A stretch of 49,753 nt of DNA from Octopus bimaculoides (GCF_001194135.2 NC_068981.1:168492710-168542462), one strand, 5' to 3'; shown: positions 6,112 to 33,657, counted from the stretch's first letter. A program made the numbers and translations. Notes: a model not told the origin generated them from the sequence alone.

Positions 6112-6656
6112 TTAATTTTTGAAATAATGGACATAAACATTATTTCTATGCGAGAAACCATGTACAAGATATCTTTGTCTACCTGTTGTGTAATCATGGA
6201 GGTGTGTGATTGGTGAGGACACAAAAGAAGCAGCAGCAGCAGCTGCAGTACTGCTTACAGGAGGAGGGGAAGGAAGAGCTAGTGTTGACGTGGCAGAGTC
6301 AGAGCTTTCATTGTTAAAGTCTGTACAGTTATCATTACCATCACAACCATCAATTTTACTTGTTCTTTGGTTGCAGCTGCCACCGCTACTGCAACCGCCA
6401 CTGCTATTGCAGCTGTTCAGGTCGTCCATGCCGTTACTGTCTTCAGTGCTGAGCGGCAGCAATTCTCGTGAAAGGTTAATCTGAAGAGGCAGGTTCGGGA
6501 CACGCTTTAAATGGTGATACACATCCATGTCTGCACGCACAAAGAGAGTGATACCAGCACGATAGGCGGCTGGAATGCGGATGTGTTGAGTAAGTTGTGG
6601 TCGGTAGCCAGGGACGCGAGGCATGCTAGCTTCACGGAGTACGTTGACTACTTGAC
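6112..6656 (-). CDS. Terminal coding exon 8 (G-QVVNVLREASMPRVPGYRPQLTQHIRIPAAYRAGITLFVRADMDVYHHLKRVPNLPLQINL...HYFKN*), then a low-complexity tail
   Basis: Acceptor tttctttcag, phase 1, stop TAA at 6114-6112; GC-richer, coding-like composition. Confidence 0.88.
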
Positions 6657-7357
6657 CTGAAAGAAAAAAAGGATAAATGAATTTAAAAACAAACATACAA
6701 TTTAAGTATGAAATATTGATAAACTATTTATCAAGCAAATGAAGGAGCTACTATGTGATTGCTTGACCTGCTAGAATTATCAGCAAAATCCCCTCCAAAT
6801 CACATTCAAGACCCACCCACCACAACAGAATCTATATTCTAAAATCAAGTATGTATATATATATATATATACATGTATATATGTATATATATATATATAT
6901 ATCATCATCATCATCGTNNNNNNNNNNNNNNNNNNNNNNNNNNNNNNNNNNNNNNNNNNNNNNNNNNNNNNNNNNNNNNNNNNNNNNNNNNNNNNNNNNN
7001 NNNNNNNNNNNNNNNNNNNNNNNNNNNNNNNNNNNNNNNNNNNNNNNNNNNNNNNNNNNNNNNNNNNNNNNNNNNNNNNNNNNNNNNNNNNNNNNNNNNN
7101 NNNNNNNNNNNNNNNNNNNNNNNNNNNNNNNNNNNNNNNNNNNNNNNNNNNNNNNNNNNNNNNNNNNNNNNNNNNNNNNNNNNNNNNNNNNNNNNNNNNN
7201 NNNNNNNNNNNNNNNNNNNNNNNNNNNNNNNNNNNNNNNNNNNNNNNNNNNNNNNNNNNNNNNNNNNNNNNNNNNNNNNNNNNNNNNNNNNNNNNNNNNN
7301 NNNNNNNNNNNNNNNNNNNNNNNNNNNNNNNNNNNNNNNNNNNNNNNNNNNNNNNNN

Positions 7358-8093
7358 GATGGCCCTGCTCGATCTGTAGAAAAGGTGTAGGTAGAAACTC
7401 TATAAGATGTACCCAGTGTAAGCTATGGACACATAAGAGGTGCAGCAATATCAAAGGAAGGCTAACTGGGAAGATGGCTTTTGTATGTGGCAGATGCTCA
7501 GGAACAATAAACACTGAAAATGTGCAGAAAACAACCTTTGCCACATTCCAGGGAGAAAAACTAGAAGTAGCTGATAGCTTCCGTTATCTAGGTGATCAAG
7601 TCAGTAGCGGGAGAGGGTGTGCTGAAAGTGTAGCTGCTAGAATAAGAATAGCCTGGGCAAAGTTCAGAGAGCTCTTACCTCTGCTGGTGACAAAGGGCCT
7701 CTTACTCAGAATAAAAGGTAGATTGTATGACGCATGTGTACGAACAGCCATGCTACATGGCAAGAAACATGGGCCGTGACTGCTGAGGACATGTGTAAGC
7801 TCGCAAGGAATGAAGCCAGTATGCTCCGATGGATGTGTAATGTCAGTGTGCATACTCGACAGAGTGTAAGTACCTTGAGAGAAAAGTTGGACTTAAGAAG
7901 CATCAGTTGTGGTGTGCAAGTGAGATGACTGCACTGATATGGTCATGTGGTGAGAATGGATGAGGATAGCTGTGTAAAAAAGTGCCACACCCTAGCGGTT
8001 GAGGGATCCTGTGGAAGAGGCAGACCCAGGAAGACCTGGGATGAGGTGGTGAAGCATGACCTTCGAAAATTGGGCCTCACCGAGGCGATGACT
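7358..8093 (+). mobile_element. RTE-clade LINE, RT C-terminal part with PHD-like finger; frameshifted, lacks its 3' end
   Basis: WPCSICRKGVGRNSIRCTQCKLWTHKRC..VCGRC; FRYLGDQVSS; ARIRIAWAKFRELL; GRGRPRKTWDEVVKHDL. Confidence 0.9.
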
Positions 8094-8597
8094 TTTCAAA
8101 ATCTTTTTTTTTTAAATATTGAAACCAGTCAATCTTTAAAAGACTTCTGCATTTTCAAATTCTCTTCCCTATATATTTTCATTCATGCGGTACCTTCCAA
8201 TTTTACTTTTATATATATATATATATATATAAATAAAACAATGTGTGCATTGCAAGTGTGTAAATGAGTATCACTGTCATGCAAGTAGAATCTTTCATTT
8301 CCAATATTCTGTGGAAATGTGTCTGGTAATGGGAAAATATTACCTTACTTGAGAGCAAGTGAGAATTGGCAATAGGAAAGGCATCCAACAATAGAAAAAT
8401 CTACATCAACAAATCTTGTCTGACCACATGAGTATGGAAAAGTGGACATTAAAATAATGCTGATGATGATTACATGTATACATAAACATATTTTCGCATT
8501 TATATTGGACATTTTGAGCAAGGTAATACGCATCCAATGAACCAACCATTATGAAATCAGCGAAGAAATTAAAAGGTCCAAAAACAGAGCACAATAC

Positions 8598-8780
8598 CTA
8601 ATACATTCATGGTTCTCCACCGAAGGGGTTCATCATGACACATTAAATTGGACAAGTTCGTGTCTTCCTGGAAACGGCTGATGATATCTTGTCGCTTGAT
8701 CAACAGAACCCTATCACTTGTTAGTTGTTGCATTAAATGTTTTCCACTCACCAACTTCAAAGGGTTTGTCATGTAAGCAC
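8598..8780 (-). CDS. Coding exon 7 (G-AYMTNPLKLVSGKHLMQQLTSDRVLLIKRQDIISRFQEDTNLSNLMCHDEPLRWRTMNVL-G)
   Basis: Acceptor gtcatttcag, donor TAG|GTATTG; 183 nt, phase 1/1. Confidence 0.88.
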
Positions 8781-8940
8781 CTGAAATGACAGCGTTTGCA
8801 TTTTATTAAAATAAAGGAAAATAATAAAACAAACAATAGTAAAAATCAAAATTATTTAATGTGAATGCTACAAACAAAATAGCCATCCTTTGTATATTAT
8901 TTACATCTCAAGGATATTTGTCCTCATCTTGTTTGTTGTT

Positions 8941-8983
8941 AACACGTTTCGGCTGATACACGCTCCAGCCTTTATCAGGTGTC
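8941..8983 (-). ncRNA. Degenerate hammerhead-ribozyme-like motif within the PLE terminal part
   Basis: GACAC CTGATAA AGGCTG(gagcgtgtat)CAGCC GAAAC GTGTT: CUGANGA box with G8>A, 5-bp stem II, GAAA box, GACAC/GTGTT stem I. No clear NUH triplet in this copy. Confidence 0.55.
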
Positions 8984-9049
8984 TTGGAGAAATTTCAAAC
9001 CTGGGTTCACATTCCTAAGGTATTTTTCGATATTATTATTATTATTATT

Positions 9050-9124
9050 CAGGTAATTGCCTGGAATTGAACTCGGAATCTTGGGGTTAGTAGCCTGTGC
9101 TCTTAACCACTACGCCATATGTCC
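9050..9124 (-). ncRNA. tRNA-derived (Pol III A box + B box) segment embedded in the PLE terminal part; not an intact tRNA gene
   Basis: TGGCGTAGTGG (A box), GGCTACTAACC (anticodon-arm-like), GAGTTCAATTCC (B box), followed by an (AAT)n tract. Confidence 0.65.
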
Positions 9125-10469
9125 ATGGGAAATTATAGAGTGAATTTTAGGGCTTATAAATCTAATATTTTCTTATCCTTCCTTAATACCGGTCCCCATA
9201 CACTATTCGTATTTGCACTTGGTCTGCTTAAGAGGTTGTTGTATCCTAACATATATGCTGCTTCTTTTAGTTTTCCTATTTTTCAGTGGTGTTCTCTGTC
9301 TATTATTTTAACTTCATCCCACAGGGGAAGGTGGTCTCCATTTTTTCATATATGATCAGCTATACCCGATTTATCAATATCTCCTCATGCCACAGCTTTG
9401 TGATATTCACCTACCATTATTTTGAGGGGGTGATATGTTTCGCCTTTGTATAACCTACCACAGCTGCATGGGAAGGAGTACACGCAGTTCTTAGTCACAT
9501 TCTCTTCTATTGGTGGTTTTACTCGAAGGAGATATTTGTGAAGTGGACGCATTAATAACACGCACCAAGTATGGATTCAGGATATCCATATACTGCAAGC
9601 TGAGCATCACGGACGATACCTCAACTTCAATTCCCATCATTCATACAGTGTAAAGAGAGGGATTGCTCAGTGCCTAAAACATCGAGTAAAGAATATAAGT
9701 AGCGATTGTGATATATATCATGAAGAAATGATCAAGCTCAATAACAATCATTTAAGCAACAACTATCTCAGAAACACACAATCCACTCCAATTATGAAGA
9801 AAAAAGAGAATGAAACCAATAAACTGTCCACAGTCTGTCTACCCCATGTGAAAGGCCTCTCCGAAAAGACACAAAAGATATGCAGCCCATATGACATCAG
9901 GACAGTATTCAAGATTAATACAACACTTCGCAAATATCTCCTTTGAGTAAAACCACCAATAGAAGAGAATGTGACCAAAAACTGCGTGTACTCCGTCCCA
10001 TGCAGCTGTGGTGGGTTATACAAAGGTGAAACATGCAGCCCCCTCAAAATAAGGGTAGACGAACATTGCAAAGCTGTGACATGAGGAGATATTGATAAAT
10101 CAGGTATAGCTGATCATATATGGAAAAATGGAGACCACCTTCCCCTGTGGGATGAAGTTAAAATAATAGACAGACAACACCACTGGAAAATACAAAAACT
10201 AAGAGAAACAGCACATATGCTAGGATGCAACAACCTCCTAAGTAAATAATCCTGTTTATGCAACTGAAGCAGCATCGATTTAGATTGCCATCTATATATC
10301 ATACTCAGTGTATATATGTTATTGACAGGCAAACTACTGTAGGTAAACATACTGTGTTAAAAATACATTATATATCTGAGCGAGTAGTAAGATTGCTTTA
10401 GTTGGCTAGTGAGACTGTTGGATACACTTCAGCCTTCTTGGCCCTTGTCAATGATGTACTTTGCAACCA

Positions 10470-10742
10470 TATGCCTAGACGAGGCCGCCGGACTGGCTCC
10501 TGTGCAGGTGGCACATAAAAAGCACCATTAGAGCATGGCCGATGTCAGTACCGCCTGACTGGCCCTTGTAAAAGCACCCACTACACTCTCAGAGTGGTTG
10601 GTGTTAAGAAGGGTATCCAGCTGTAGAAACTTTGCCAGATCAGATTGGAGATTGGTGCAGCCTTCTGGCTCACCGGCCCTCAGTCAAACCGTCCAACCCA
10701 TGCCAGCATGGAAAGCGAACGTTAAGAAATGATGATGATGAC
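10470..10742 (+). mobile_element. RTE-tail element (family E)
   Basis: Same 3' sequence and (GAT)n tail. Further copies at ~783-941(+), 2651-2830(-), 3100-3350(+), 8262-8470(+), 12280-12420(+), 21990-22195(+), 22480-22685(+), 28459-28600(-), 29860-30012(+), 40560-40780(-), 43690-43815(-). Confidence 0.8.
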
Positions 10743-11157
10743 ATAGTAAATGATGAATAATACATTTATTGGCATTGAGAAAAGCTGCTGGATTGAATAA
10801 ATCATCTGGTGTATGCAATTGAAGCAGTATTAAATTAAAATAGATATGTATAGATCATACTTAATGTATATACAACATTGACAGCAAGTTACTGAGATTT
10901 TTGCCAGAAATGAAGTCTCTTATACAATAATACCATATATATCAGAGGAGACTAAAAATTGTCCTGGCAGAGGCTAGCAAGAACACTAGATGCAGTCTGG
11001 CCTTCTTGAGTCTTATTAATTATGTATACTTGCAGCCACATGTCTAGACAAGATCTGTCACTTTTAGTAAATAAGAGACAGTGAACAATACATTCACTAA
11101 TATTGAGAATAGCTGCTGGGCTGAATTGCATACACCAGAAAACTGAAATGAAAAATA

Positions 11158-11490
11158 GGGTAAAGACCCTCTTTTGTCATGAATGACCAGGGGATTGCAC
11201 CTAGAAAGTTCTCCTCCGAGGCACAAATCTGGGTAAGGTTGTTTTATGGAAGACCAGTAGTCGTCCATGCATACCAGCCTCTCCTCTTCATGCCACTGAT
11301 GTTATCCATAGGAAAGGCAGAAGCAGAAACAGTCTGGCATCAATGATGTTGCAATTCATTTCTACAGCTGAGTGAATCTGAGCAATGTGAAATAAAGTGT
11401 CTTGCTCAAGAACACAATGTACAGCCTGGTCCAGGAACCAAACTCACTACTTCATGATTGTGAGTTTGACGCTCCAGCCACTGAGCCATA
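11158..11490 (-). mobile_element. tRNA-derived SINE (family B)
   Basis: Head tggctcagtgg on the - strand; core tgtgttcttgagcaagacactttatttcac shared with 36501-36833. Confidence 0.75.
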
Positions 11491-12635
11491 AAACTGAAAT
11501 AATTATTAACAAAAAAAAAAAAAAGACCAATTGCCTTGGGCTGACTAATACCTTGTGAGAAGAAAGGGTAAACAGATACTGGTGAGAGCTTCCTNNNNNN
11601 NNNNNNNNNNNNNNNNNNNNNNNNNNNNNNNNNNNNNNNNNNNNNNNNNNNNNNNNNNNNNNNNNNNNNNNNNNNNNNNNNNNNNNNNNNNNNNNNNNNN
11701 NNNNNNNNNNNNNNNNNNNNNNNNNNNNNNNNNNNNNNNNNNNNNNNNNNNNNNNNNNNNNNNNNNNNNNNNNNNNNNNNNNNNNNNNNNNNNNNNNNNN
11801 NNNNNNNNNNNNNNNNNNNNNNNNNNNNNNNNNNNNNNNNNNNNNNNNNNNNNNNNNNNNNNNNNNNNNNNNNNNNNNNNNNNNNNNNNNNNNNNNNNNN
11901 NNNNNNNNNNNNNNNNNNNNNNNNNNNNNNNNNNNNNNNNNNNNNNNNNNNNNNNNNNNNNNNNNNNNNNNNNNNNNNNNNNNNNNNNNNNNNNNNNNNN
12001 NNNNNNNNNNNNNNNNNNNNNNNNNNNNNNNNNNNNNNNNNNNNNNNNNNNNNNNNNNNNNNNNNNNNNNNNNNNNNNNNNNNNNNNNNNNNNNNNNNNN
12101 NNNNNNNNNNNNNNNNNNNNNNNNNNNNNNNNNNNNNNNNNNNNNNNNNNNNNNNNNNNNNNNNNNNNNNNNNNNNNNNNNNNNNNNNNNNNNNNNNNNN
12201 NNNNNNNNNNNNNNNNNNNNNNNNNNNNNNNNNNNNNNNNNNNNNNNNNNNNNNNNNNNNNNNNNNNNNNNNNNNNNNNGGGCATCCAGCTGTAGAAACT
12301 CTGCCAAATCAGATTGGAGCCTGGTGTAGCCATCTGGTTTCACCAGTCCTCAGTCAAACCGTCCAACCCATGCTAGCATGGAAAGCGGATGTTAAATGAT
12401 GATGATGATGATGATGATAATGATTACATTCCACAGCTCTGCACTTTTGAAGTAATGTATCAAAAAAGTTTCCCTTACTTGCACAAAAGGCAAGGGTTGG
12501 GGGTGACAGGAAGAGCATCTGGTTGTGAAATACTACCTTAGAAAAAGTACCATTTCCAATCTGTACCAGTACAAGGAAATGGATGCAGAATGAGTGAATG
12601 AATGAACAAATGAACTAATCAATAAGTATTCTCAC

Positions 12636-12740
12636 CCTTTGAACTAACACCATAGATCATTTGATGATGCCAGGAGTCTGGGATCGCCCAACCTGGTTGA
12701 ACTGCCTTTTGGATATTTAAAGTAGCAATAGGTACTGCAT
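12636..12740 (-). CDS. Coding exon 6 (D-AVPIATLNIQKAVQPGWAIPDSWHHQMIYGVSSK-G); contains candidate catalytic His
   Basis: Acceptor tttatttcag, donor AGG|GTGAGA; 105 nt, phase 1/1. Confidence 0.88.
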
Positions 12741-13409
12741 CTGAAATAAAATATAAATAAATGAATTGTTTTTTTAATAATAATAATAATAATAATATAA
12801 CTTTAATAGTATAATCACTGAGTACCAGCCACATTTAAGTTATGATGGCTGTGTGATCTAAATGCCATGTTCTCAGTTCAGAGTTTAAATCCCATTTGAG
12901 TTGACTTTGCTTTTCCTCCCTCCAAGCTGGATGCTAGATAAAATAAACACCAGTAACATATTGCATCCACCACAAGTGCCATTCTTTGTTATGGTGTAGT
13001 TGGCTTGTTCGTTTCAATGACCCTGAGAGCTATACCAATGGATTGCAAGCTGCTGGGAGGGCCTCCAAAGCTGGACAGGTCAAAGGTTAGAGGTCAGGCT
13101 AATATAGACTTCCTCTTCCTAACAATACTACCTAGAAAAATAAGTGAAGTTGTCAATATTAATTTAAAACCAACAAAACCTGGGAAAAGAAGGCCATCTC
13201 TCAGCTGCATTGAAATCCGAAAGGACCTCCTGCTTTACATGTCATTCTCTGACATGAATCCGCAAGAGAGGTAGAAGAGAGGACTCACTAAAAACAGCTG
13301 GAGGCAAAGTTGGGAAAACAGGGATCCATCTGGATAAAAACAGAAAGCTTGAACAGAGAAAAGTGAAGAAAAGTTATTGCTGCCCTGTGCTCCATACGGA
13401 ATGAAAGTC

Positions 13410-14507: not shown

Positions 14508-14639
14508 CTTTTTTAATCCATTCTCCAAGCCATTTCAAAACTTGAACATCACGGGGTGGATAGAAATCAAAAAATCTCCCTTTAATGGTTCCATTTGTCA
14601 AAGATTCAACAAACTTGATTAAATCCTCAGCAGTAGTTC
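14508..14639 (-). CDS. Coding exon 5 (G-TTAEDLIKFVESLTNGTIKGRFFDFYPPRDVQVLKWLGEWIKK-D)
   Basis: Acceptor ctctttctag; 132 nt, phase 1/1. The donor is weak (AAG|GTTGAA) but is the nearest GT giving the required phase before the in-frame stop. Confidence 0.85.
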
Positions 14640-15368: not shown

Positions 15369-15480
15369 CTGCTTTTGCTCTAGAAAATAAGTACTGTGGA
15401 ATTGGAGCTGTGGAGTCTCTCAAATTGATTGGAGCCTTTTCTAATACTTTAGGTTTGTCCAATAAGATATTAAATGCATT
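15369..15480 (-). CDS. Coding exon 4 (NAFNILLDKPKVLEKAPINLRDSTAPIPQYLFSRAKA-G)
   Basis: Acceptor cttctactag, donor CAG|GTAAGT; 112 nt, phase 0/1, open frame. Confidence 0.88.
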
Positions 15481-16974
15481 CTAGTAGAAGTAATAAATAA
15501 ATTAAATTAAAATATCTAATATGAATTCTGCGTAATAAAAGAGGTAAAAAAAAAAGAAAGAAAAGAAAAAGCCTAACATTTGTAACACATTAAAATATAA
15601 GGAAACATGTCACAACAGACCAAGATTGATTTCAATCTCCTTTAGCAGTTCTTATTGCCAACCAAGTTATTGTAAAATATTTAGGGACGATATTTAACTC
15701 TTTATGCTTCATCCGGAAGGCCTCACAACACTTATTCTAAGCAGCCTCAGGAAGGAAGTTTTGCAAACTTTAGTTGTTTTCTTTTTTGCATCTTTTTTCT
15801 AATAGTCGGGTCTGAAGGAAGGGGCAGTGACCTTGGCCTTTGGAGACCCTCTTTGACTAGTAAGATTTGATGTTATTAATGTTTCCACTGAAATTCTGAA
15901 TGTCACCAACACTAGGGAAAAACATGAGTAAGGAGGGAGCTTTAGAGGGAACAACATTCTGGAAAGGGAAGATGGAATGAAGAACTGAGCATAGTGTTTA
16001 GTGTAGAGTCTGGGGTTGGGCATTGGATATAACAAGAGAGGAGAATTAAGATGAGCAAGTTAGAAATGCCTGAGTGAGATGGTATAAGCTCAACAGAAGA
16101 GGCAGAAAAGGCAGAATGAGGAAACGGCAACTGTAGACTTGTTCTAAAACCATTTCCTCAAGGTCTTCCAGTAAAAAAAAAAAAGTAATCCTGCCTCTTC
16201 CACTCATCATAATCATTATCATTTTACATCTGCCTTCTATGCCATACAAAAAGAGAATGGTGTTAATGCAATACTGTGAAATGACAGTAAACAAATGCAT
16301 ATATATATATATATATATATATATNNNNNNNNNNNNNNNNNNNNNNNNNNNNNNNNNNNNNNNNNNNNNNNNNNNNNNNNNNNNNNNNNNNNNNNNNNNN
16401 NNNNNNNNNNNNNNNNNNNNNNNNGGTGCATCTCATGTGCCACCCGCGCAAGAACCAGTCCAGGGGCACTGGCAGCGATATATATATACATACAGAGAGA
16501 CAGACAAACATTTTTATATAAAAATATACAACATAATACACAAACACGCCTGTTTAAATTAAAATATAATATATAAAAAAATAACATTTTTTTAATACAA
16601 ACGTATGTTTATATAAACATAAAAAAAATGAGATAAGGAGAAAAATTCATATAAATGAATTAAAGGATGATATACTGAATGACGATGTACACACAATTTT
16701 TACAATTAACTGAAGTTTCCCTCTTAACTGGATCAAAGCAGTTTCATTGTGACTAAACTTCACGTCTGCAGCTGCCACCTCATCAAAGCTCAGATTTTTT
16801 TTTCCTCTGTTAAGCATGAAAATTCCTGTTTTGAATTCTTGAAATTTTCTCTCCTTTATTTTGAAAATTTGTTAACATTTACCATAAGGGCTTTGTTTTC
16901 TGACTCCAGTTTAGAGGGAAATAGCAATTATTTGAGAATTTTTTTGCATATATCATGTAGTATGTTGGCCAGTA

Positions 16975-17356: not shown

Positions 17357-17454
17357 ATGTTGGCCAGTAACTTACATATTACAAAAGACAGTGGGTGTAT
17401 ATTTAAAAACAAAGAAAAAAGCAATAGGATCGAATAACTTATCGAATAACTTAC

Positions 17455-17595
17455 CAACATGTTAAGGACAGCAATAGGGCCACATGCGGAAACTTCAGTC
17501 TCTGACCGTTTCACTTGTCTATGGTAAGCTTGGTTTTCATCCCAAATCATTACACGTTCTACACTAGATCTTCTTGACTTCATAGAATGGTTCTT
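17455..17595 (-). CDS. Coding exon 3 (KNHSMKSRRSSVERVMIWDENQAYHRQVKRSETEVSACGPIAVLNML); contains candidate catalytic Cys
   Basis: Acceptor ttcttgtgacag, donor TTG|GTAAGT; 141 nt, phase 0/0. Confidence 0.88.
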
Positions 17596-20295: not shown

Positions 20296-20836
20296 TCTTT
20301 TACTTGTTTCAGTCATTTGACTGCAGCCATGCTGGAGCACTGCCTTAAAAGGTCTTTTTAGNNNNNNNNNNNNNNNNNNNNNNNNNNNNNNNNNNNNNNN
20401 NNNNNNNNNNNNNNNNNNNNNNNNNNNNNNNNNNNNNNNNNNNNNNNNNNNNNNNNNNNNNNNNNNNNNNNNNNNNNNNNNNNNNNNNNNNNNNNNNNNN
20501 NNNNNNNNNNNNNNNNNNNNNNNNNNNNNNNNNNNNNNNNNNNNNNNNNNNNNNNNNNNNNNNNNNNNNNNNNNNNNNNNNNNNNNNNNNNNNNNNNNNN
20601 NNNNNNNNNNNNNNNNNNNNNNNNNNNNNNNNNNNNNNNNNNNNNNNNNNNNNNNNNNNNNNNNNNNNNNNNNNNNNNNNNNNNNNNNNNNNNNNNNNNN
20701 NNNNNNNNNNNNNNNNNNNNNNNNNNNNNNNNNNNNNNNNNNNNNNNNNNNNNNNNNNNNNNNNNNNNNNNNNNNNNNNNNNNNNNNNNNNNNNNNNNNN
20801 NNNNNNNNNNNNNNNNNNNNNNNNTATATATATATA

Positions 20837-21218
20837 GGTGACTGATGACAGTACCGCCTGGTTGGCACCCATGCCAGTGGCATGTTAAAAGCACCATTTG
20901 ACCATGGTTGATGCCTGTGCTGGTGGCATGTAAAAAGCACCATTTGAGCATGGTCATTGCCAGTGCTGCCTGACTGGCTCCAATGCCACTGGCATGTAGA
21001 AAGCACCATTCAAGTGTGGTCCCGCTTGACTGGCCCTCGTGCCAGTGGCATGTAAAAAGCACCCACTACACTCTCGGAGTGGTTGGCATTAGGAAGGGCA
21101 TCCAGCTGTAGAAGCACTGCCAGATTAGATTGGAGCCTGGTACAGCCTTCTGGCTTGCCAGCCCTCAGTGAAACCATGCCAGCATGGAAAGCAGACGTTA
21201 AACGATGATGATGATGAT
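20837..21218 (+). mobile_element. RTE-tail element (family E; SINE or 5'-truncated LINE) with internal tandem units and (GAT)n tail
   Basis: gcacccactacactctcggagtggttggcattaggaagggcatccagc..gcatggaaagcagacgttaaac(gat)n; four copies of gccagtggcatgtaaaaagcacc upstream. Confidence 0.8.
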
Positions 21219-22810
21219 GTAGATATGGAAGACACGACTATGCGTTTTAAGAAATTAATACTGGAACCATGTCATTTTGGTAGTGACCCAAGGCTATTGT
21301 AGAAGAGATAAACAGTCCTGAAGCCTATAATGTGTGTGTGTGTGTGTGTGTGTGTGCATGTGCACATGTATGTATGCACAGTGTGTGTAAGTGCCATGTG
21401 CATATCTTCCCAACTGAATTTTGATGTTTACGTGTGAAACAATGACCCCATTAAGACAGATTCGATGTTTACGTCTGCCACAGAAACATGTCCAGCTGTT
21501 GTGTGGCTTGTCATGTGAAAGGCAAGAAAAATAAATACCTTACTTACAGACAAGTTAAGGTAGGGCAACAAGAAAAGTATTTGGTAGTTGAAAACTGCCT
21601 CCACAAGTTTCAAGCCATAAAAGCAGAAATGTAACAATGACACTGCTCCTGAATCTCTCCTATATTTCTCTTCATCATTTGCTACAGTCACCTCATCCTG
21701 CCCACTCACCCAACTCAAGCCCCTATATCACTACACCTATTCTCACCATCCCCAATGTGTCTTGAGGGTATGTCCCAACACATTTTAGCCATTATGTCTT
21801 TCACTATTGCTCTCTGTATCTTACTCTCTAGCTCACTTTCTCCTGTTTTCCAACTGGGATATTTATGTATCTACACTACAGCAAGACACCTATATCTGTC
21901 CCATCTATGTCTTAAATCTCTCAACTGACACAAAGCCACACCCACTCGATACTACTCTCTCCTCTCCACTCCTCCTAGTTGAGGGGGTTTTTGCTCTGCA
22001 AAGTACTTTGTGATTGTTGGTGCTAGTGCCGTGTAAAAAGCACTCAGTACACTCTGTAAAGTGATTGGTATATCCAGCTGTACAAACCATGTTAAAACAG
22101 ACAACAGAACCTGGAGTGGCTCCTGGCCTTGCCAGCCCCTGTCAAACCATCCAACCCATGCCAGCATGGAAAACAGATGTTAAATGATGATGATATACAG
22201 ATACAATGGAAGAGTGAAATGGGTGATTCTTAGCTGAAGAGCTCTTATGTCACAGCAGCTGTTTCATTGTCTTCAAGAAAGACAATCCTGTAAGATCTTA
22301 TTTTATCAATTGCGATAATAAAATCACCAGTTTGTGTTGTTTGAGAAGTTACCTGTGAGATACTAACTTCCTCTCCGAGGGTAGATCTATCTCATCTTCT
22401 AGGTGCAGATTGGCAGTGTGGGTAAGAAGCTTGTATGTGTGTATACCTTTGACTTGACATCATGTGATGACTTAACAAGTGTCACTGTCATACAAGTGTT
22501 GTTTCTTTTTAGTCTTTCCATAAAAAAAGATGTCTGGCCAAGGGAAATATTACCTTGTTTAGAAATGGGTAAGGGTTGGTAACAGGAAGGGTATCCAGCC
22601 ATAGAAAATCTGCCTCAATGACTTCTGTCTGACCCATGCTGGCTTGGAAAAGTGCTAAGTGGTTGTTAAATGGTGATGATGATCATGTTGTTCAGATATT
22701 GGAGGAGATGGTGTTAGGCGTTGACTCAATGGCTTCTTGTGAGTAGCAAAAAGATTGACAACCTAATACTGGTAAAATCTGGAGTCCTTTGAAATTAGCT
22801 ATGATCTGCA

Positions 22811-23644: not shown

Positions 23645-23807
23645 CTTACTAGTATGCTGCATATTTAAAGCATGCGAGTCTGTCTTGTGATCAGTGTCGG
23701 AAGCAGAGGTGCAGCAGCATTTGTCACCAGGACTGTCAGCAGTGCATTTGTCTAATCGGACCCTGTCGATATCTTCATAGATTGGTTCTTGTGTACTGGG
23801 AATATCA
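23645..23807 (-). CDS. Coding exon 2 (R-DIPSTQEPIYEDIDRVRLDKCTADSPGDKCCCTSASDTDHKTDSHALNMQHTSK)
   Basis: Acceptor tactag, donor AAG|GTAAGT; 163 nt, phase 2 in and phase 0 out, keeping the frame between exons 1 and 3. Confidence 0.8.
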
Positions 23808-23824
23808 CTAGTATATGAAAATAC

Positions 23825-23825
23825 A

Positions 23826-23870
<45 letters not shown>
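23825..23870. repeat. (CA)n microsatellite, read as (UG)n in the pre-mRNA just upstream of the exon 2 acceptor
   Basis: Direct reading. Confidence 0.95.
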
Positions 23871-23873
<3 letters not shown>

Positions 23874-24400: not shown

Positions 24401-24479
24401 TTTACTGACTCCGGAAAGATAAACTGTACAACTGATCCATGCATTCCAAACATTGCAGAACATCTGGTCTAAATCTTGT

Positions 24480-25135: not shown

Positions 25136-25195
<60 letters not shown>

Positions 25196-25882
25196 NNNNN
25201 NNNNNNNNNNNNNNNNNNNNNNNNNNNNNNNNNNNNNNNNNNNNNNNNNNNNNNNNNNNNNNNNNNNNNNNNNNNNNNNNNNNNNNNNNNNNNNNNNNNN
25301 NNNNNNNNNNNNNNNNNNNNNNNNNNNNNNNNNNNNNNNNNNNNNNNNNNNNNNNNNNNNNNNNNNNNNNNNNNNNNNNNNNNNNNNNNNNNNNNNNNNN
25401 NNNNNNNNNNNNNNNNNNNNNNNNNNNNNNNNNNNNNNNNNNNNNNNNNNNNNNNNNNNNNNNNNNNNNNNNNNNNNNNNNNNNNNNNNNNNNNNNNNNN
25501 NNNNNNNNNNNNNNNNNNNNNNNNNNNNNNNNNNNNNNNNNNNNNNNNNNNNNNNNNNNNNNNNNNNNNNNNNNNNNNNNNNNNNNNNNNNNNNNNNNNN
25601 NNNNNNNNNNNNNNNNNNNNNNNNNNNNNNNNNNNNNNNNNNNNNNNNNNNNNNNNNNNNNNNNNNNNNNNNNNNNNNNNNNNNNNNNNNNNNNNNAGGA
25701 TGGACATAGATGTTCAGAAAACAACACACTGGATAAAATAATCTCTGATATATTGTGTCTGAAGAAAGTTAGGATGTTTATGGCTGGGATCTCACCAACA
25801 CACATTATTATTCTAGGTGTTATTAGAAATGGTATTCGGTCTTAAAACTTCCTAGAATATATATATATATATATATATATAG

Positions 25883-26822
25883 GGCATGATGGGCAAATTG
25901 TTGCCATTGTTTGTTTTTGATTTTGTCAGTTTTACAGTACGGTAGGGTCAGTTGGGCACTGTCTGTGAGAAAAACAGCACCAAGACGCAATTCACTCAGC
26001 CAGAAATTGGAAACGACATGCTGTGCTAATTGGCATTCATACCAGACAATTTTTATCCCAAGCCATTAAGGGCAAGAAGAAAGACTTTTGAACAAACTCA
26101 AGCATTCCCAGTAACTGAACATGCTTTGGTTTTTCTCAGACGAGAAAAATTTCTATCAAGATCAGATGGTGAACACACAAAACAACAGCTGGCTTGCTGT
26201 GTCCCCAAAACATGTACCAAGAATGATAAAAATCAAATATCCAGTCAACACCATGGGGTTTGGAATGATCTCTGGTGATGGAGACATTATGCTTCCATTC
26301 ATCTTCCCACACAGCCTCAGACTCAACATAGAGGCTTACATCAAGTGTCTGGAGGAGATAGTGCTGCCCTGAGTCAAGAGGGTGGCTGCTGGAAGACCCT
26401 ATATCTGGCAACAGGACCCCGCACCATGCCACACAAGCAGTCATAACTCTCAGACAATTTCTGCAATCACAACCCCTAACATCTGGCCACCTAACTCCCC
26501 AGACTGCAACCTCCTTGATTATTATGTGTGGGGTGCAGTTGAGCAAGAGACCAACAAAACTCCTTATAATACCAAAGATGAACCAAAGGCAAGGATTATG
26601 GCAGCATTCACCAACTTAAACAAGGAGACTGTGCAGAAGAGTTGCAGGAGATTCCGAAGTTGTCTGGAGGCCATGGTTGAAACCAATGGCAATTTTACCA
26701 AAAAAATTTATTCTTTAGTATTTCAAGATATTTTTATGTAATTTTGGTAAATATATCTGTTAAATGAGATGTCAGTGTTATTTTCCTTTTTGCGTAATTT
26801 AGATGACAATTTATTCACCACA

Positions 26823-26824
<2 letters not shown>
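25883..26824 (+). mobile_element. Internally deleted Tc1/mariner-superfamily (maT/DD37D-like) transposon flanked by (TA)n
   Basis: FFSDEKNF, WQQDPAPCH, WPPNSPDCNLLDYYVWG (third catalytic residue D; spacing reads D33D in this decayed copy); decayed 23-bp TIRs. Confidence 0.8.
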
Positions 26825-26885
<61 letters not shown>

Positions 26886-27285
26886 GAACTCATGTTAACT
26901 AAAGGAAAGGATAGACCAAAAGTTGAAGTGGTTAGTAAAGTTGGTAGTGTAGTATTTAGTAGATAGAGAGGTGGAGGATATACAGAAAAATAAAAGCTTA
27001 ATGGTTTATAGAAGATGAAGAGATCAGGATATATAATTGAGAAAGTTGTTGGTATATAATAAATTAAACTGTTGCTGTATATAAATAGATGACAAAGTTG
27101 ATAGTCTGAAAAATACAGGGGCATATAACCATTCACTATCAAGTGATACATTTCTGGATGTAGACATAATATTGATAGAAACACAGTAAATGTAAATATT
27201 GAAATATTTCATATTTGAAAATGAAGAGAAAAGTCTGAAAATTTAGTTATAAACAATACCTGTGAGACATTTTAAACATTTCATA

Positions 27286-28091
27286 TACTGTAAAAACCCA
27301 TACGCATGTGATTTTCAGGATAAAAATTGTTAAAAATAGCTTCTACTCATGTAAAATTTGAACCCCAAAGTTTTCAGAATTGCTGATATGGCCAGGGGAA
27401 AAAGGTTTTCAATTTAGTTGTATTTAACATAATTTCACCTACTTATGATTAGATTTTATTAAATTTTCATCAAATAAAAATAATTTCTGTTTAACAGGTA
27501 TCACATTGAAAGCTATCAAATTACAAAGTGTTTGTGTTGTTTATAATAAACTTTATTTTACATTTCTTGCCCACAAGAGATAATATCCGATCTTTAGCAT
27601 ACTGCTGTATGTCTTCTCAATTCACGATCATAGGAAAAGTTGTTGAAAAGAATTATCAACAAAAACAAAGCTGATAAATATGCATAGGTGTTGCAAATTA
27701 AGTTTAATTAACAATAGACATCAGTTTGGATGACACTTTACTCAACTGAGTAAAATATGATCTGGACCGTGATTACTAGTTTGAACATCAGACTTCAAAA
27801 AGTAGTTAACCATTTAATGGTTTTAGTAAATTTATATAGAAAAAGTGAACATTATACTGTCCAGCATAAATAAAAGTAAACTTCATTATATTTAAGCTCC
27901 TATTTTTTCTGACATTAAATGAATCAACTTCTGGTATGAATGTTTACATTTTGTACGTCTTTTTTCAACAAAAAATTTCTAAAAAAATTCTGGAAACAAT
28001 CTACTCATGTAATTTACACATCCCTAAAGTTCATTTTTATTTTTGTGGAAAAAAAAAAAGAAACGTTCAATTTACATGGGTTTTTACGGTA
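27286..28091. mobile_element. Non-autonomous TA-target DNA transposon (TcMar-like), ~800 bp
   Basis: TA|CTGTAAAAACCCAT ... ATGGGTTTTTACGG|TA: 14-bp TIR (1 mismatch) with TA target duplication. Confidence 0.65.
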
Positions 28092-28186
28092 ACTTTAAAC
28101 ATTCTACATTGTTGAGCAATTATCATCATTTAATATTATTATTTCTAAATCTCTCAAACAGAGACATCCAGTAATAGTTCTTTAAA

Positions 28187-28458
28187 GTAAAGGCTGTTTG
28201 TCAACATAATGTGGCTGCTCTGGAAGGAATAATGTTACTGTTGTTTTAGCCCCAAGAAACATTGTTTCTAGCTGGCTATACAACACAATATCTGTGTCCT
28301 AATTTTTTCAAACAGGAGTGCTGAGCTCCCTGTTTGAAAATATAAGGACACAAATATTGTGTCGTATAGCCAGCTAGAAACAATGTTTCTTGGGGCTAAA
28401 ACTACAGTAACATCATCCCTTTCAGGACAACCACATTATGTTGGCAAATAGCCTTAAC
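28187..28458. mobile_element. 272-bp foldback (MITE-like) palindrome
   Basis: Arms of ~130 bp are reverse complements (e.g. gccccaagaaacattgtttctagctggctata / tatagccagctagaaacaatgtttcttggggc), with a loop near 28320. Confidence 0.85.
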
Positions 28459-29651
28459 ATCATCATTTAATGTCCCCTTTTCCATGTTGGCATGGGTTGA
28501 ACAGTTCAACAGGAACTGATGAGCCAGAGGGTGGCACTGAACTCTAATGTCTACTTTGGCATGGTTTCCACAGCTGGATGCCCTTCCTAATGCCCCTTTA
28601 CAGTATACTAGGAGGTTACCAAGTACTCACAAGACCAGGCCCCTCAATTTAGTAGGATATAGTATTAAGGAATGTGAAAGTATGACAGAGGGACAGAAGT
28701 AGATGTCCTGCTGAAGAGGGGGATTTTCACCTAAAATATCATGAAGGTCATTATGATTTAAGGGAGGACAGCAAGTCAGTAAGGTTTGTACAGGGGATAC
28801 ATTTGTAGTATATTGAAGAGGGGAATATGAATATGCTTGCCTTAAGTTCTCAACCCCAGGCGGATTGGAACTGCAGCGGTGCTGTTGCGACATAGGGCAA
28901 GTCTTGGGCATTTCAAACTTGGTGCAGCCCATTCATTCCCAGATCTGACAACAGTCCATTTCTTCTAGAAAGAAGAGACAGACACAAAAAAGAACTGACC
29001 CAAGTAAAGGAATGGAACTTTATTTATTGACTCTTGCCCCAAAAGGAAGAAAGGTGGAGTTGAACTCAGAGTGCAGAGAGACACAAGACAATTTGTTACC
29101 CATTGTCTGACCTCAACCATTTCATCATCTTTGATGTCAATATGGAATATCATGTAGAAAGCTTCTGTATTGAATTGATATGTTGAGTAGCTGTCGATAT
29201 ATGATGTACAGGAGTGAGACTACTGCAACACCAATGCAGTATGAAGAAGGAGAGACCATTGAGATATCAGTATGGTATATAAAAAATCCACACTCATAAG
29301 ATGTCAATGTATTATACAGAGAATAATCTTTCAAATTTTGGGGAATGTCCAAGCTGAGAAAATTTTGCTCCAGGTGTAGCTGTATAGTTAAGAAATCTGC
29401 TTCTCAACCATATGGTTTCTGGTTCAGTCCCATTGCATGGCATCTGGGGCAAGTGCCTTTTACTTTCGTTCTAGGCTGATGACAGCTTTGTGAATAGATT
29501 TGGTAAATGGAAACTGAAAGAAGCTCTTTGTGTATATATGTGCGTTTCCTTGCCTGAACATTGCATGATAATTGGAAACAAATATCACCATCATATAAGT
29601 TGTTTACTTCATTTGCAAGCTTCCACAGAAGCATGCCTGGCCATGGGAAAT

Positions 29652-29860
29652 ATTGGTTTCAAATTTTGGCACAAGGCCAGCTGTTATGGGGAAGGGGCTA
29701 AGTCAATCACATCAACCCCAATGCTCAACTGGCACTTATTTTATTGACCCTGAAAGGATGTAAGGTAAAGTCAATCTCGGCAGAATTTGAAGTCAGAACA
29801 AAAAGACAGACAAAATGCCGCCAAGCATTTTGCCCAGCATGCTAATGGTTCTGCTCGCTT
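29652..29860 (-). mobile_element. SINE (family F)
   Basis: Same core as 24480-24675 with a more complete head (ttagcatgctgggcaaaatgcttggcgg). Confidence 0.7.
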
Positions 29861-30561
29861 TCCACTATAGTTATGGGAAATATTACCTTCTTCGGAAGAA
29901 GGTGAGTTTGGTGATAGGAAGGGCATCCAGTCATAGAAAACCTGTCTCAACAAATTTCATCAGACCCAATTAGGCATGGAAAAGTGAATGCTAAAATGAT
30001 GATGATGATGACTGATGATTGATGAGGTGATAGAATATGGTTAGATGAGTCTGTAAATAGAATGATATGTCCTATTACAGACACATTTAACAGATGCTAT
30101 TAGGGAAGAAGAATAGATGTTAATAATGATGATATGCTAAGAATTTTGAATGAATTAAAATAACAATTTTATCATGAGATAATTACCAACTGCAAAAGAT
30201 GGAACTGAAATATTTTAAACACGGAGACACACACACACATATATACATACATACACACAGGTACATATATATGGAGAGAGAGAGAGAGAGAGAGAGATGC
30301 TATATAATAAGCACACGCTATGCAAACATATACTACAATCTGGCAAGCTGGTAGGTGTGAATAAAAAACTTAAGTTTTAACTAGCATGCTGTATGAGAAG
30401 ATACAAGTAGTTATAAAGAGCAAAACAACATAAAATGAATATGTCAAAAAGATATTGATAATGATGATGGTGATGATAATATAGCAGCTAAATATTACAC
30501 TGTACCACTTGAAATATATATATATATATATACAATTGACAACCTTTTAAAATATGAAGCT

Positions 30562-30567
30562 TTTATT
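30562..30567 (-). promoter_or_regulatory. Candidate intronic polyadenylation signal AATAAA at +8..+13 of the intron after exon 1
   Basis: Minus strand reads TTC CG|GTGAGTC AATAAAAGC. Confidence 0.4.
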
Positions 30568-30574
30568 GACTCAC

Positions 30575-33500
30575 CGGAAATCACTGTCCTCACTAGTAGG
30601 TGAACTTGGAGATGACAGAAAATTGTTTTGATGTCCATTGTGTGAAAGACAAAGAGAAACTAAATGGCAATGATCATCTGCCTCTCCTATTTCATTGCTG
30701 TCATGAGAACCACTTTCTTCTGAACCGACTGACACATCATCTTGATCATCAAGATTTAGATTGGAGAAACATCTCTGTGTCATGTTGTGATGGTTTTGGA
30801 AATTAGAATGACTATGTGGCAGTGTTGGATCTTCAAGAGCAGACAGATTGGAGTTGCTGCTAGATGCACTCAAATCGTTTGTAGCACAATTTGTTAATTG
30901 CGTTTTGGAAGGAGCTGATCCATTAGAATTCATTTGGAGCAAATCTCCTGTCGGACTGGGGCAAGCAGAGTCAACATCATCGGCATAAGGGATTTCACTC
31001 AGTGAAAACTCAAAGCCCATTGCACCAGTTGAGCTACCAGCACTGTTCAAGTTTTGCTCTAAGTTTGGGGTGGTAGTGGAGGCCAAGTCAAAATCAAGAA
31101 ACTCCATGTCCATTGCACTAGTAGAACTGCCAGCACTATTCAAATTTTGTTCCGAGTCTAAATTTGGGGTGGTTGTGGAGACAATGTCAAAATCAAGGAA
31201 ATCTACTTCTGGAGACATCACAGCATCATCAGAAGTTTGGCAGCTGTTTGTTGCTCCACTTAATGGTAATTGCATTGCAGTGAAAGAGTTATGGCACTGG
31301 GGAATTTTGACACCACCATCAAGGATTGAGTGGCTGTCATGGCTGTTTTCAGAGCACCCAACTTCTTTTGCAGGTTTCTTTAGACAGTTGCTTTGCAGAT
31401 GGTTATCACTGGTACATAATAACAATGTAGGAGGGGAGGTGGCAGAAGAGGGAGATGTCGATGGAGATGACTGAGTAGAAGGAGATGATGACAGTAACGA
31501 AGAAGAAACTTTCAGGACATCAGTACATTTTATCACAGAACTACCAGGTTCACGCTTTACACTATTACTATCACCAAATCCAGTCAAACCAACATAGCTA
31601 TTTTCACTACACTTAGAGTTATTGCAAGCACTAATTGAGGGACTGGGAAAAGAGAGTTGGTTGTGCTTTTTATGATCACAATTTTTAAAATAATTACTAT
31701 TAGGAAAATGGCTATAACTGGGTTCATGGCTTGATATTGCCATGTCATTTATACTAGCAACAATCTGTTGGTTATTGGTTTCATTGATGTCACTACTGGT
31801 CAGAGACGAAGATGAATCTGTGGAATCAGTAGAACTTGACATGAGACGGCTAGTCTGTACAGGGGGAAAATCTGCTTCAATAAAATCTCCAAAATCTTCT
31901 TCCCGATTGTCTATAGACCCTGTTCCTGAAGAACCTAAATTGTTTGAGCGAAAGTTATTTGAGTTTAAAGTGGTGTTGCTACAACCAACAGTAGCAGAGC
32001 TCTCTTCTACACAAGTCCCAATCTGACTCTTATAATTATTATCTTTATTATAATGCACAACATTGTCTGGATCACAGTAAGAGTAGCTGGGGCAGAGAAG
32101 TTCAGTTTCCAACTCAAAAGACTCGCCTGATCCACAGCAACCTTCAAAGCTGTTGCAAGCCCGACAGCAGTCTTGCAATGAAGAAATGAACCGGTTTTTT
32201 TGAAACTTACATTGCAAGTTGTAAAGTGCTTTGCATTTCTTGCCCACTAACTTACTGCTAGTGGTGGTATTGGTGTTTGTGCAATTGTTGCAATTAATAC
32301 AAGAAGATACAACTGTTCCTGCAGCACCGGAGGCAGAATTCATCATGTTGCTATTGTTTTCATATTTTAAAGATTTACACGTGTGCTGTTGTTGCTTGGC
32401 GTTTTTCAACTTTGATTGAATCAACAAGTCCGATTTTGATGCAGAAGCCACATCAAGGCTACCTTCATAATTTACCAAGTCACTAACAGCCGAATGTTTC
32501 TTTTGGTTTTGATTCTCAACATGCTGCAGCTGGGACATCTTAGTGATGGTCTTGAAATCTGGAGTCATTATGAGACCATTAGTTTGTTGAAGAGTGTAAC
32601 ACTTGGAGGAACAAGGCATATTACCATTAATAGGCCCATTTACTTGAACCAGAGGGCCTTGTTTGAAAAGGGTGCAATTACTATAAGGCATCATTGTTGT
32701 TGGTATTGTTGAAGTAGTAGTAATAGTGCTTGTAGTTATAGTGGCAGCAGCAGTGTCAGCCATCTGTGCGGAAGAAATCGTATCACTTTTACTCAGTAAT
32801 GATTTCGATAGCTTTGGTTGGTGCAACTTCACTGAAGTGGAGCTATCTTTCTGGATCACCGAAGAGAAAGTGTTTCGCCTGTTATCAGAAGTACTGTAAT
32901 TGTTATGGACAGGGATATTGATCTGCTGCTGGCTATGGTGATGGTGATGATGATGATGATGACTATGGTGGTTCTGGCTGTGATATCGGGGAAGATGGTA
33001 ATGGTAAGAAGGGTTTGGATCGCTACTGGTTTCTTTTGGCCGTGCTGCCTGCAAATTGTTAACAACTGTCTCACAGTTTTCATTGTTTGAGGCACTGACA
33101 GGTTGAAGAGGTGAGCAGCTTTGCCATTTTGGTACAATTCCTGGGTTTGGATCTGTACTTGCCAGGGAAGGTAAGGAATCATGCAAAGAGATTTCACAGT
33201 TACCACTAGCTCCATTACATGATGGTTCTGTAACAGGGTTTTTAGAGTGAAAATCACCTATGGCATGGAAGTTTTGGGGATCGCTTTTTCTTTCTCTACC
33301 AGCACTGCTACATTCATCCTCGAAAGAGCTGTTGTTATTGTAATAACTAATGCGATTATTGTTGTTGTTGTTGTTTTGGGAGCGACTGTGGCTATCTAAA
33401 ATGCTTGCTGGGGTGATGCCATCAGTTTGGCTCTGAGGCAAAGAATAAAAGTCAAAATTTGAATTATCCAAGCCATTCTCACTTGTAGCAATCACCTCAT

Positions 33501-33657
33501 CTTCTATGCTGTTATCATAATCACTATTCCCCACAGCTTCCTTTGTAGAGTTGCCCATCCTTTGGTATAAACTACATCTTTCAATGATACCAGGTGATGC
33601 TGTGGAGTCAGCAGTAATTAATGGTGGGATATGTGCACAGGGAAGAGTGTTCTCCAT
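30575..33657 (-). CDS. Coding exon 1 (1027 codons + 2 nt) of an uncharacterised ~1487-aa protein; low-complexity Ser/Asn/Thr/His-rich N-terminal region
   Basis: 3-kb uninterrupted ORF. Acceptor (pyrimidine tract ...tttcag) puts the exon start at 33724; in-frame TAA upstream of ATG 33657. Donor CG|GTGAGT at 30574, phase 2, matches the next exon. Confidence 0.9.
31018..31203 (-). repeat. Coding tandem duplication (93/99-nt units) inside exon 1
   Basis: DFLDFDIVSTTTPNLDSEQNLNSAGSSTSAM vs EFLDFDLASTTTPNL--EQNLNSAGSSTGAM. Confidence 0.9.

Follow-up and report, generated by a model that had tools for sequence, protein, structure and literature searches.

An octopus gene for a long protein with a predicted papain-fold cysteine enzyme domain of a candidate new eukaryotic family

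Does a 49,753-nucleotide (nt) stretch of Octopus bimaculoides DNA (NC_068981.1:168492710-168542462; hereafter the window, with positions counted from its first letter) encode, on its minus strand from 33657 down to 6112, one long protein that ends in a working cysteine enzyme, and to which known enzymes would that enzyme be related? The locus contains one genuine gene of an octopod-like cephalopod that codes for a protein of 1487 amino acids. The C-terminal folded domain of this protein (~280 residues, residues ~1095-1372) is supported by structure prediction as a papain-fold cysteine enzyme (clan CA, C39-like), and sequence comparison places it in a separate, so far undescribed eukaryotic family. 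The domain is probably an active intracellular thiol peptidase or isopeptidase that acts on protein substrates, with recruitment predicted to occur via short conserved motifs in the disordered N-terminus.

Fold and family of the C-terminal domain

AlphaFold2 was run on a 47-sequence alignment for residues 1083-1373 and, in a second run, for residues 1083-1487. The domain model reached a predicted local distance difference test (pLDDT) value of 92.8 and a predicted template modelling (pTM) score of 0.90, and the second run agreed with it. In the model, Cys1120 (Cys38 in domain numbering) opens a 12-residue helix (38-49) with pLDDT > 90, the W-H-H-Q motif lies within a nine-residue strand (152-160), and Asn1251 (Asn169) is located between the strands 165-167 and 172-174; the loop preceding the Cys drops to a pLDDT of 84. 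A Foldseek search of the PDB returned as its top match the C39 double-glycine peptidase LahT150 (6mpz), with an E-value of 5.6e-4, a probability of 1.0, and a template modelling (TM) score of 0.62 on the target. Further PDB matches (probability 0.54-1.0) included the papain-like toxin domain CdiA-CT (8ssk/8ssm), PeiR (a pseudomurein endoisopeptidase), AziU3/U2, and CtaG (an amide synthase). C39-like endolysin domains of phages, together with an AvrRpt2-like protease, ranked first among predicted viral structures (E-values of 5e-5 to 4e-4). The modelled secondary structure and the top PDB match agree with the layout proposed in the initial annotation, i.e., a papain-like order of a Cys on a helix, a His on a strand, and a following Asn.

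When 1.84 billion cluster representatives (clusters at 50% identity) were searched exhaustively with the family profile, 864 clusters scored E <= 1e-3, and 257 scored E <= 1e-30. Homologues of the domain reached E = 7e-79. Most of the family clusters combine a long N-terminal extension with the C-terminal domain. The window's domain is 37-61% identical to other members over its full length and carries the family hallmarks W-H-H-Q, T-N-P, and NVLGQVVN. The named members are all protostome and comprise molluscs (Pomacea, Aplysia, Bulinus, Lymnaea, Patella, Mizuhopecten, Mactra, Sinanodonta, Batillaria, and Argonauta), annelids (Owenia and Lamellibrachia), arthropods (Tribolium, Tenebrio, Photinus, Coccinella, Andrena, Chrysoperla, Hyalella, Eurytemora, and Strigamia), and rotifers, and the remainder are unnamed assembly or metagenome sequences. 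No deuterostome and no vertebrate was found among the 30 clusters sampled, which do not amount to a census; this is suggestive of an absence of the family from deuterostomes. The pattern WHHQM[IV][FYW]G retrieved no relatives from 185,579 bacterial and archaeal genomes in a search with this one motif, which divergent relatives could escape.

All of the named members that were looked up are annotated as "uncharacterized" or "hypothetical," and no Pfam family exceeded its threshold for the domain, the N-terminus, both cephalopod orthologues, or more than 80 relatives, in keeping with the initial remark that no gene name could be recognized for the protein. No paper was found that names the LOC identifiers of the named members, and a 2023 survey of papain-like families, including its supplements, did not mention these taxa. 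The Batillaria attramentaria protein P0001 (KAK7504557.1) is called "Ubiquitinyl hydrolase 1" in UniRef and hypothetical by NCBI; it has no Pfam deubiquitinase (DUB) domain, and the UniRef name is probably an automatic, rule-based label of non-experimental origin that ought not to be passed on to other entries unsupported.

The domain resembles peptidase C39 (PF03412/PF13529), the double-glycine peptidase domain that processes bacteriocins, in its fold and in part of the active-site spacing. The family has a Gln six residues before the Cys (position -6), the Cys stands at the N-terminus of a helix, and the His starts a strand and is followed by a Gly at +6. The third residue occurs at +16 from the first His and precedes a Pro (N-P here, D-P in C39). 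On the other hand, the domain has Asn for Asp and His-His for His-aromatic, the octopods are without the Gln, and the domain is larger (~280 compared with ~140 residues), with additional helices and strands. It also differs from C39 in being eukaryotic, apparently cytosolic, and free of an ABC transporter fusion, and no ABC domain was detected in the octopus gene or in 71 relatives. An hhalign comparison with the single C39 domain sequence of CvaB aligned only the Q...C motif and was non-significant. AvrRpt2-like proteases (C70) and phage C39-like endolysins have the minimal papain core in common with the domain, but at 12-17% identity and TM scores of 0.35-0.5, and they are secreted or lytic enzymes of bacteria or phages.

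Phytochelatin synthase (MEROPS C83, PF05023) shares the arrangement Q-x5-C-G-x-x-[AS]-x-x-x-V-L-N-A-L around the nucleophile, and GNAT fusions are known in both families. In contrast, its third residue is an Asp at +18 rather than an Asn at +16, and the protein described here lacks a C-terminal PF09328 and has a large disordered N-terminus instead. The best score against the PF05023 hidden Markov model (HMM; gathering score of 24.9 bits) was that of P0022 (12.6 bits, E-value of 0.08), which is below the cut-off. A comparison with the single, validated sequence of AtPCS1 aligned the Q...C motif alone and was non-significant. ACTMAP (C19orf54), GUCD1, and BIVM are intracellular papain-like proteins of cluster I, the same broad cluster that contains C39 (PMC10318531). 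These three occur in vertebrates, whereas the named members of the present family are protostome only. No part of human BIVM or human ACTMAP was aligned by hhalign, a weak test with single query sequences. ACTMAP, as a protein-terminus protease paired with a GNAT acetyltransferase, offers a parallel to the GNAT fusions of the family. Among the relationships suggested in the initial annotation (a C39, phytochelatin synthase, or BIVM-type layout), that to C39 was supported by the fold, the sequence links were non-significant, and a relation to BIVM was not detected.

A permissive Pfam scan of 71 members recovered Phytochelatin (7/71, best E-value of 0.005) and Peptidase_C39_2 (2/71, E-value of ~0.009) as the only recurring peptidase families. 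The domain was therefore placed, given that no significant sequence match occurred outside its own family, as a separate family in the C39/phytochelatin synthase neighborhood of clan CA.

Active site and candidate chemistry

The central helix begins with the predicted nucleophile, Cys1120, which is encoded by TGT at 17482-17484. Position -6 from this Cys, the site of the family's oxyanion-hole Gln, is occupied by Glu1114 (GAG, 17500-17502). The His1235-His1236 dyad (12664-12669, with His1235 at 12667-12669) is located at the start of a β-strand, and the third residue of the predicted triad, Asn1251 (AAC, 8764-8766), lies in the motif T-N-P. All of these codons are on the minus strand, and those of the Cys, His, and Asn, together with their motifs, were recovered exactly where the initial annotation had placed them. 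From His1235, a Gly follows at +6 and the Asn at +16.

Trp1234 and Asn1251 were conserved in all 47 sequences of the alignment, His1236 in 46, and His1235 in 38. The Cys was kept in each of the 20 homologues in the first homologue set that cover the position, and the combined C/W-H-H-Q/N-P pattern occurred in 126/217 sequences, the departures being mostly fragments. The invariance of the three residues, proposed initially as a check, held for Cys and Asn within these alignments of 20 and 47 sequences; the first His was not invariant, and the conserved element at this site is a His-His dyad. Three clusters resembled pseudoenzymes (P0128, P0136, and P0155), with the Cys replaced by His, Ser, or Lys and the remaining domain retained. 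Both His were also lost in P0128 and P0136 (W-V-N-R), and such a paired loss of Cys and His would be in line with pseudoenzymes that have branched off from an active family.

His1235, the choice of the initial annotation, is tentatively favored as the catalytic base, on indications that diverge between conservation, the pseudoenzymes, and remote alignment. Two family members that retain the Cys read W-H-F. In the hhalign register with phytochelatin synthase, which is non-significant, His1235 falls on the catalytic His and His1236 on the Phe of G-H-F-S-P-I-G-G. In papain and C39, a Gly at +6 and the third residue at +16 from the catalytic His are found, as at His1235.

In the proposed mechanism, the nucleophile would be Cys1120, at the N-terminal end of the central helix, and it would form a thiolate-imidazolium pair with a His of W-H-H-Q, preferably His1235. 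His1236 would take the adjacent position, which is aromatic in related families (C39, phytochelatin synthase, and deubiquitinases), and would line the S2 site, while Asn1251 on the next hairpin would orient the catalytic His. Attack of the thiolate on the substrate carbonyl would yield an acyl-enzyme that is subsequently hydrolyzed. The Gln at -6 would complete the oxyanion hole in most family members; in octopods, which have Glu1114 instead, this role would fall to the Cys1120 backbone NH together with a further donor, possibly with lower activity. The likeliest chemistry would be the cleavage of peptide or isopeptide bonds after small residues, as in C39 and proteases of ubiquitin-like proteins, or the processing of protein termini.

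Several results speak against an active, C39-like peptidase. At the sequence level, no C39 or C39_2 HMM exceeded its gathering score for the window's domain or for 16 homologues, and the domain had no match in the PDB by sequence or by profile. Furthermore, a comparison of 159 family sequences with 120 phytochelatin synthase sequences in hhalign reached a probability of only 2.6% (E-value of 0.017), and because of this low value the domain was not filed under phytochelatin synthase. At the active site, His1236 is slightly better conserved than His1235 (46/47 versus 38/47), and four Cys-bearing members have a Gln or Cys at the first His; if His1236 were the base, the next residue would be a Gln or Arg and an aromatic gatekeeper would be absent. 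The window protein and its Argonauta counterpart read KRSE[TS]EVSAC, with a 2-residue insertion and a Glu at -6, and an octopod enzyme that is weakened or inactive is possible because the family Gln is missing. Finally, the structural neighbors include transferases and amide synthases (AziU3/U2 and CtaG), so that hydrolysis is not the sole possible chemistry.

A narrower assignment, which appears unlikely, is that of a specific deubiquitinase or ubiquitin-like-protein isopeptidase of a new class, in which the His-His pair would serve as a gatekeeper that restricts P2 to glycine. Long disordered regions with short motifs are common in DUBs, and the active-site residues of the Josephin protein ataxin-3 are Q9/C14/H119/N134. 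The present protein resembles Josephin and other papain-fold DUBs in the order Cys...His...Asn, in an Asn 15-16 residues after the His, in a Gln shortly before the Cys, and in the combination of a catalytic domain with long disordered regions. However, it differs from Josephin in that it has no Pfam match, and the Foldseek match to the Josephin-like bacterial PcJOS, which was the sole DUB among the matches (rank 22), is non-significant (E-value of 0.68). No HMM or significant fold match was obtained for the known DUB classes (USP, UCH, OTU, Josephin, MINDY, and ZUFSP), no other Pfam DUB family matched, and the protein showed no detectable ubiquitin-binding domain. A DUB is suggested by the UniRef name of the Batillaria member, but this name is presumably automatic and is non-experimental. 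In favor of such an activity, the fold neighbor C39 cleaves after Gly-Gly, and a His-[Phe/Tyr/Trp] gatekeeper that restricts P2 to Gly is common to C39 and most DUB classes (PMC7391069). The gatekeeper position in W-H-H-Q would read His-His if the first His is catalytic, i.e., the residue that follows His1235 would be a planar His, or Phe in two members, and it would read His-Gln/Arg if the second is. The gatekeeper was, however, defined as His-[Phe/Tyr/Trp] and not as His-His, and it would be wholly absent if His1236 were the base (PMC7391069).

An improbable alternative to the peptidase or isopeptidase is an acyl-transferase, a transpeptidase, or a protease whose action is linked to the acyl modification of protein termini, on the pattern of phytochelatin synthase or of ACTMAP with NAA80. 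It draws on the domain fusions found in relatives. An N-terminal GNAT acetyltransferase with intact catalytic residues is fused to the domain in three independent clusters (P0141, P0146, and P0175), and other partners, again of a domain with its catalytic residues complete, are a histone deacetylase (HDAC), a PhyH dioxygenase, leucine-rich repeats, and, weakly, TTL and an M28/M42 peptidase. GNAT fusions also occur in proteins of the phytochelatin synthase family (P0391 and P0411, PF13508 with PF05023). The fusions of the present family hint at protein-modification chemistry at amino groups or termini. ACTMAP provides a precedent as a cysteine protease that acts with a dedicated GNAT, NAA80, in actin maturation (PMC13557074). 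The Q-x5-C-G...VLNAL motif of phytochelatin synthase is the nearest echo of the family at the sequence level, CtaG (an amide synthase) and AziU3/U2 are among the fold neighbors, and two invariant Arg (R68 and R81 in domain numbering) could bind a carboxylate. On the other hand, the phytochelatin synthase profile comparison was non-significant, at the 2.6% given above, and similarity to ACTMAP was undetectable with a single query sequence. The fusions are rare (GNAT in 3 of the 71 members scanned), could be gene-prediction artefacts, and belong to alanine-rich members that are probably microbial eukaryotes. The octopus gene itself contains no partner domain.

The loss of the oxyanion-hole Gln raises a further alternative, a catalytically dead scaffold in octopods, which is quite improbable. 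The Gln is present at -6 in 145/154 sequences of the family, compared with a Glu after the 2-residue insertion in the window and Argonauta; the initial remark that the Gln is not at its usual spacing therefore holds for octopods (Glu1114) but not for the family at large. The change was shared by the window and Argonauta and was thus regarded as one of the octopod lineage rather than as an assembly error. A pseudoenzyme would also be consistent with the dip to pLDDT 84 in the pre-Cys loop and with the presence of pseudoenzyme offshoots elsewhere in the family (P0128, P0136, and P0155). However, the recognizable pseudoenzymes have lost the Cys, whereas the Cys, both His, and the Asn are intact in the window and Argonauta, and the domain, at 88.6% identity between the two octopods, is the best conserved region of the protein. 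Because these residues are retained and the domain is so well conserved, the octopod enzyme is probably still active, perhaps less so. Substitutions of Gln19 in papain, Glu included, were reportedly found by Ménard et al. in the 1990s to reduce activity without abolishing it.

Gene model and N-terminal region

The junctions were re-derived from the DNA as eight GT-AG exons on the minus strand with phases 0/2/0/0/1/1/1/1, which are compatible, and the spliced frame has one terminal stop only and no frameshift at the joins. Exon 1 (30575-33657) starts with the ATG at 33657 and encodes residues 1-1027 plus 2 nt, ending in CG before the donor GTGAGT; it alone forms a 1028-codon open frame, for which P is ~1e-30 by chance at the local base composition. 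Exon 2 (23645-23807) encodes residues 1028-1082 with the EPIYE[DE]I motif, and its junctions match those of P0058 from Argonauta hians without indels. The folded region starts in exon 3 (17455-17595, residues 1083-1129) with MIWDENQAY... and includes the nucleophile motif VSACGPIAVLNML. Exon 4 (15369-15480, residues 1130-1166/67, NAFNILLDKPKVLEKAPINLRDSTAPIPQYLFSRAKAG) holds the invariant Arg, Tyr-Leu, and Arg-x-x-Ala-Gly positions, and is followed by exon 5 (14508-14639, residues 1167-1210/11, TTAEDLIKFVESLTNGTIKGRFFDFYPPRDVQVLKWLGEWIKK), exon 6 (12636-12740, residues 1211-1245/46, DAVPIATLNIQ...PDSWHHQMIYGVSSK), and exon 7 (8598-8780, residues 1246-1306/07, GAYMTNPLKLV...RWRTMNVL). Exon 8 (6112-6656) encodes residues 1307-1487 and the stop, with the end of the domain (~residue 1372), a disordered linker, and the C-terminal motif RQRYLVHGFSHRNNVYVHYFKN. 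Five assembly gaps (6918-7357, 11595-12279, 16325-16424, 20362-20824, and 25196-25696) all fall in introns (7, 6, 3, 2, and 1, in this order), at least ~260 nt from any exon edge, and the coding sequence is complete despite them.

Homologues are collinear with this model. The Argonauta hians protein P0058 (1481 residues, annotated as "uncharacterized protein LOC115209365 isoform X1") is collinear with residues 1-1487, at 79.5% identity and with zero indels at the junctions. The re-derived junctions reproduced exactly the ~1487 residues and eight phase-compatible exons of the initial annotation. In a tblastn search, residues 180-447 of the Batillaria homologue P0001 covered exons 3-8 as six segments, which are collinear and meet at the exon boundaries, with no unmatched residues. 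The nearest approach to RNA-level support is P0115, a 1518-residue open reading frame of a cephalopod-like relative at a greater distance; it lies on one 4763-nt Logan contig and joins the N-terminal region to the domain. Relative to the model, it is missing the last part of exon 2 and the first two thirds of exon 3: at residues ~1066-1116, CCC...VAPD is joined straight to VSACGP, and the conserved MIWxExEA...Q segment is skipped. P0115 also lacks the six residues that precede W-H-H and has N-S where others have N-P; these deviations could mean that it is another isoform, a paralogue that has diverged, or a product of misassembly. That the model itself is an artefact, with the exon 1 frame and the domain exons belonging to different genes or an exon hidden in a gap, is very improbable: introns 1 and 2 span 6.8 and 6.0 kb, with gaps and pieces of transposons inside them, and a homologue search across the junctions of exons 1-8 retrieved no cephalopod transcript, but P0058 is collinear over every junction, the single 4.8-kb contig of P0115 unites the homologous N-terminus with the domain, the exon 2 EPIYE[DE]I and exon 1 DFLDFD motifs precede the domain in molluscs besides the cephalopods and in further phyla, most family members have the domain C-terminal to a long N-terminal extension, and all phases and GT-AG sites agree.

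The region encoded by exon 1 is rich in Ser, Asn, and Thr (S 17%, N 10%, and T 7.5%) and disordered-looking, and the Pfam scan found no domain in the N-terminal ~1080 residues or anywhere in the octopus gene, which agrees with the initial description of 1027 disordered-looking residues. Between octopus and Argonauta (P0058), the identity was 88.6% in the domain, 80% in exon 1, and 65% in the linker. EPIYEDI (23768-23788, minus strand, residues 1035-1041) is conserved as EPIYE[DE]I in cephalopods, gastropods, and bivalves, where 30-60 residues separate it from the domain downstream. The optimal ligand of Src-family SH2 domains is pYEEI, and by this likeness EPIYEDI may be a tyrosine-phosphorylation or docking site. 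An acidic-aromatic motif is present in two copies (SPEVDFLDFD and MEFLDFD; 31087-31209, minus strand, residues 817-857) within a duplication with a 99-nt period. Its counterpart, the consensus SPxMDFLEMDFDP, is N-terminal to the domain in the 71-member alignment, which is mostly from other phyla, and the DFLDFD-type motif resembles a clathrin box or the motif of an acidic activation domain. The recurrence of both motifs upstream of the domain in relatives ties exons 1 and 2 to the domain, and the ~1080-residue disordered N-terminus that bears them would probably bring the enzyme to partners or substrates. Neither a signal peptide nor a membrane segment was predicted in the octopus protein (maximum KD19 of 1.48), as the initial assignment of an intracellular protein without a signal peptide had implied, and the enzyme would be cytosolic or nuclear.

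Islands that are conserved across cephalopods in exons 1 and 2 include EPIYEDI, the two SPEVDFLDFD-type motifs, EIPYADDVDSAC, a Cys-rich stretch, KKCKALYNLQCKFQKNRFISSLQDCCRACNSFEGCC (32134-32241, minus strand, residues 473-508), and EEDFGDFIEADFPP, the last with an FGDF core (31861-31902, minus strand, residues 586-599). A further conserved island of exon 1 is a His run (residues 230-241; 32935-32970, minus strand) that is encoded by a (CAT)n microsatellite. The exon 8 linker that follows the domain is disordered, rich in Ser, Gly, Asn, and Cys, and ~95 residues in length. It leads to the C-terminal motif, which comprises the last 22 residues (6115-6180, minus strand), is kept in four other cephalopod-like sequences (P0025, P0031, P0058, and P0115), and is absent from other molluscs. 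Docking of this motif on the domain is not supported, since the AlphaFold2 model of residues 1083-1487 gave only a hairpin with a pLDDT of ~50 past the disordered linker.

Intronic features and significance of the family

In the polypyrimidine/branch region that precedes exon 2, 16-64 nt before the acceptor, there is a (TG)24 microsatellite (gene strand; 23823-23871), which may influence the inclusion of this exon. Open reading frame fragments occur on the plus strand in intron 7 (7474-7779 and 7947-8267) and in intron 1 (26382-26741), and the short intronic fragments had no Pfam match. One of them, which contains …YDACVRTAMLHG… and …GRGRPRKTWDEVV…, resembles the tail of a reverse transcriptase, and another (…PPNSPDCNLLDYYVWG…) the C-terminus of a Tc1/mariner-type transposase; presumably, these are the remains of transposable elements. 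A short interspersed repeat is present in both orientations (e.g., 10531-10854, 12357-12420, 21013-21237, 22095-22229, 3022-3315, and 885-995), and one of its frames reads …HHHLTSAFHAGMGW…LRAGEPEGCT.LQSDLA.FLQLD…. Several of the assembly gaps are bordered by (TA)n or (TG)n microsatellites.

For the annotation of this genome, the gain is a confident eight-exon model across five assembly gaps. A profile of the family would give a name to hundreds of proteins that are listed as "uncharacterized." A bolder possibility, tentative and unlikely as it stands, is that the domain represents a protease class of its own in eukaryotic protein modification, either a vertebrate-absent isopeptidase of ubiquitin or ubiquitin-like proteins or, as hinted by the GNAT, HDAC, and TTL fusions of a few members, a terminus-maturation protease that works with acetyltransferases, with recruitment of the DFLDFD and pYEEI type. 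Orphan families such as ACTMAP, the vasohibins, ZUFSP, and MINDY have repeatedly proved to be missing steps in protein modification. If active, the present family would be a large and well-conserved group of intracellular cysteine enzymes that has had no Pfam model, solved structure, or name. Its function is directly testable because the family is present in the tractable Tribolium and Aplysia, and, as vertebrates apparently lack it, the family could offer a selective target in molluscs and in arthropods that are pests or vectors.

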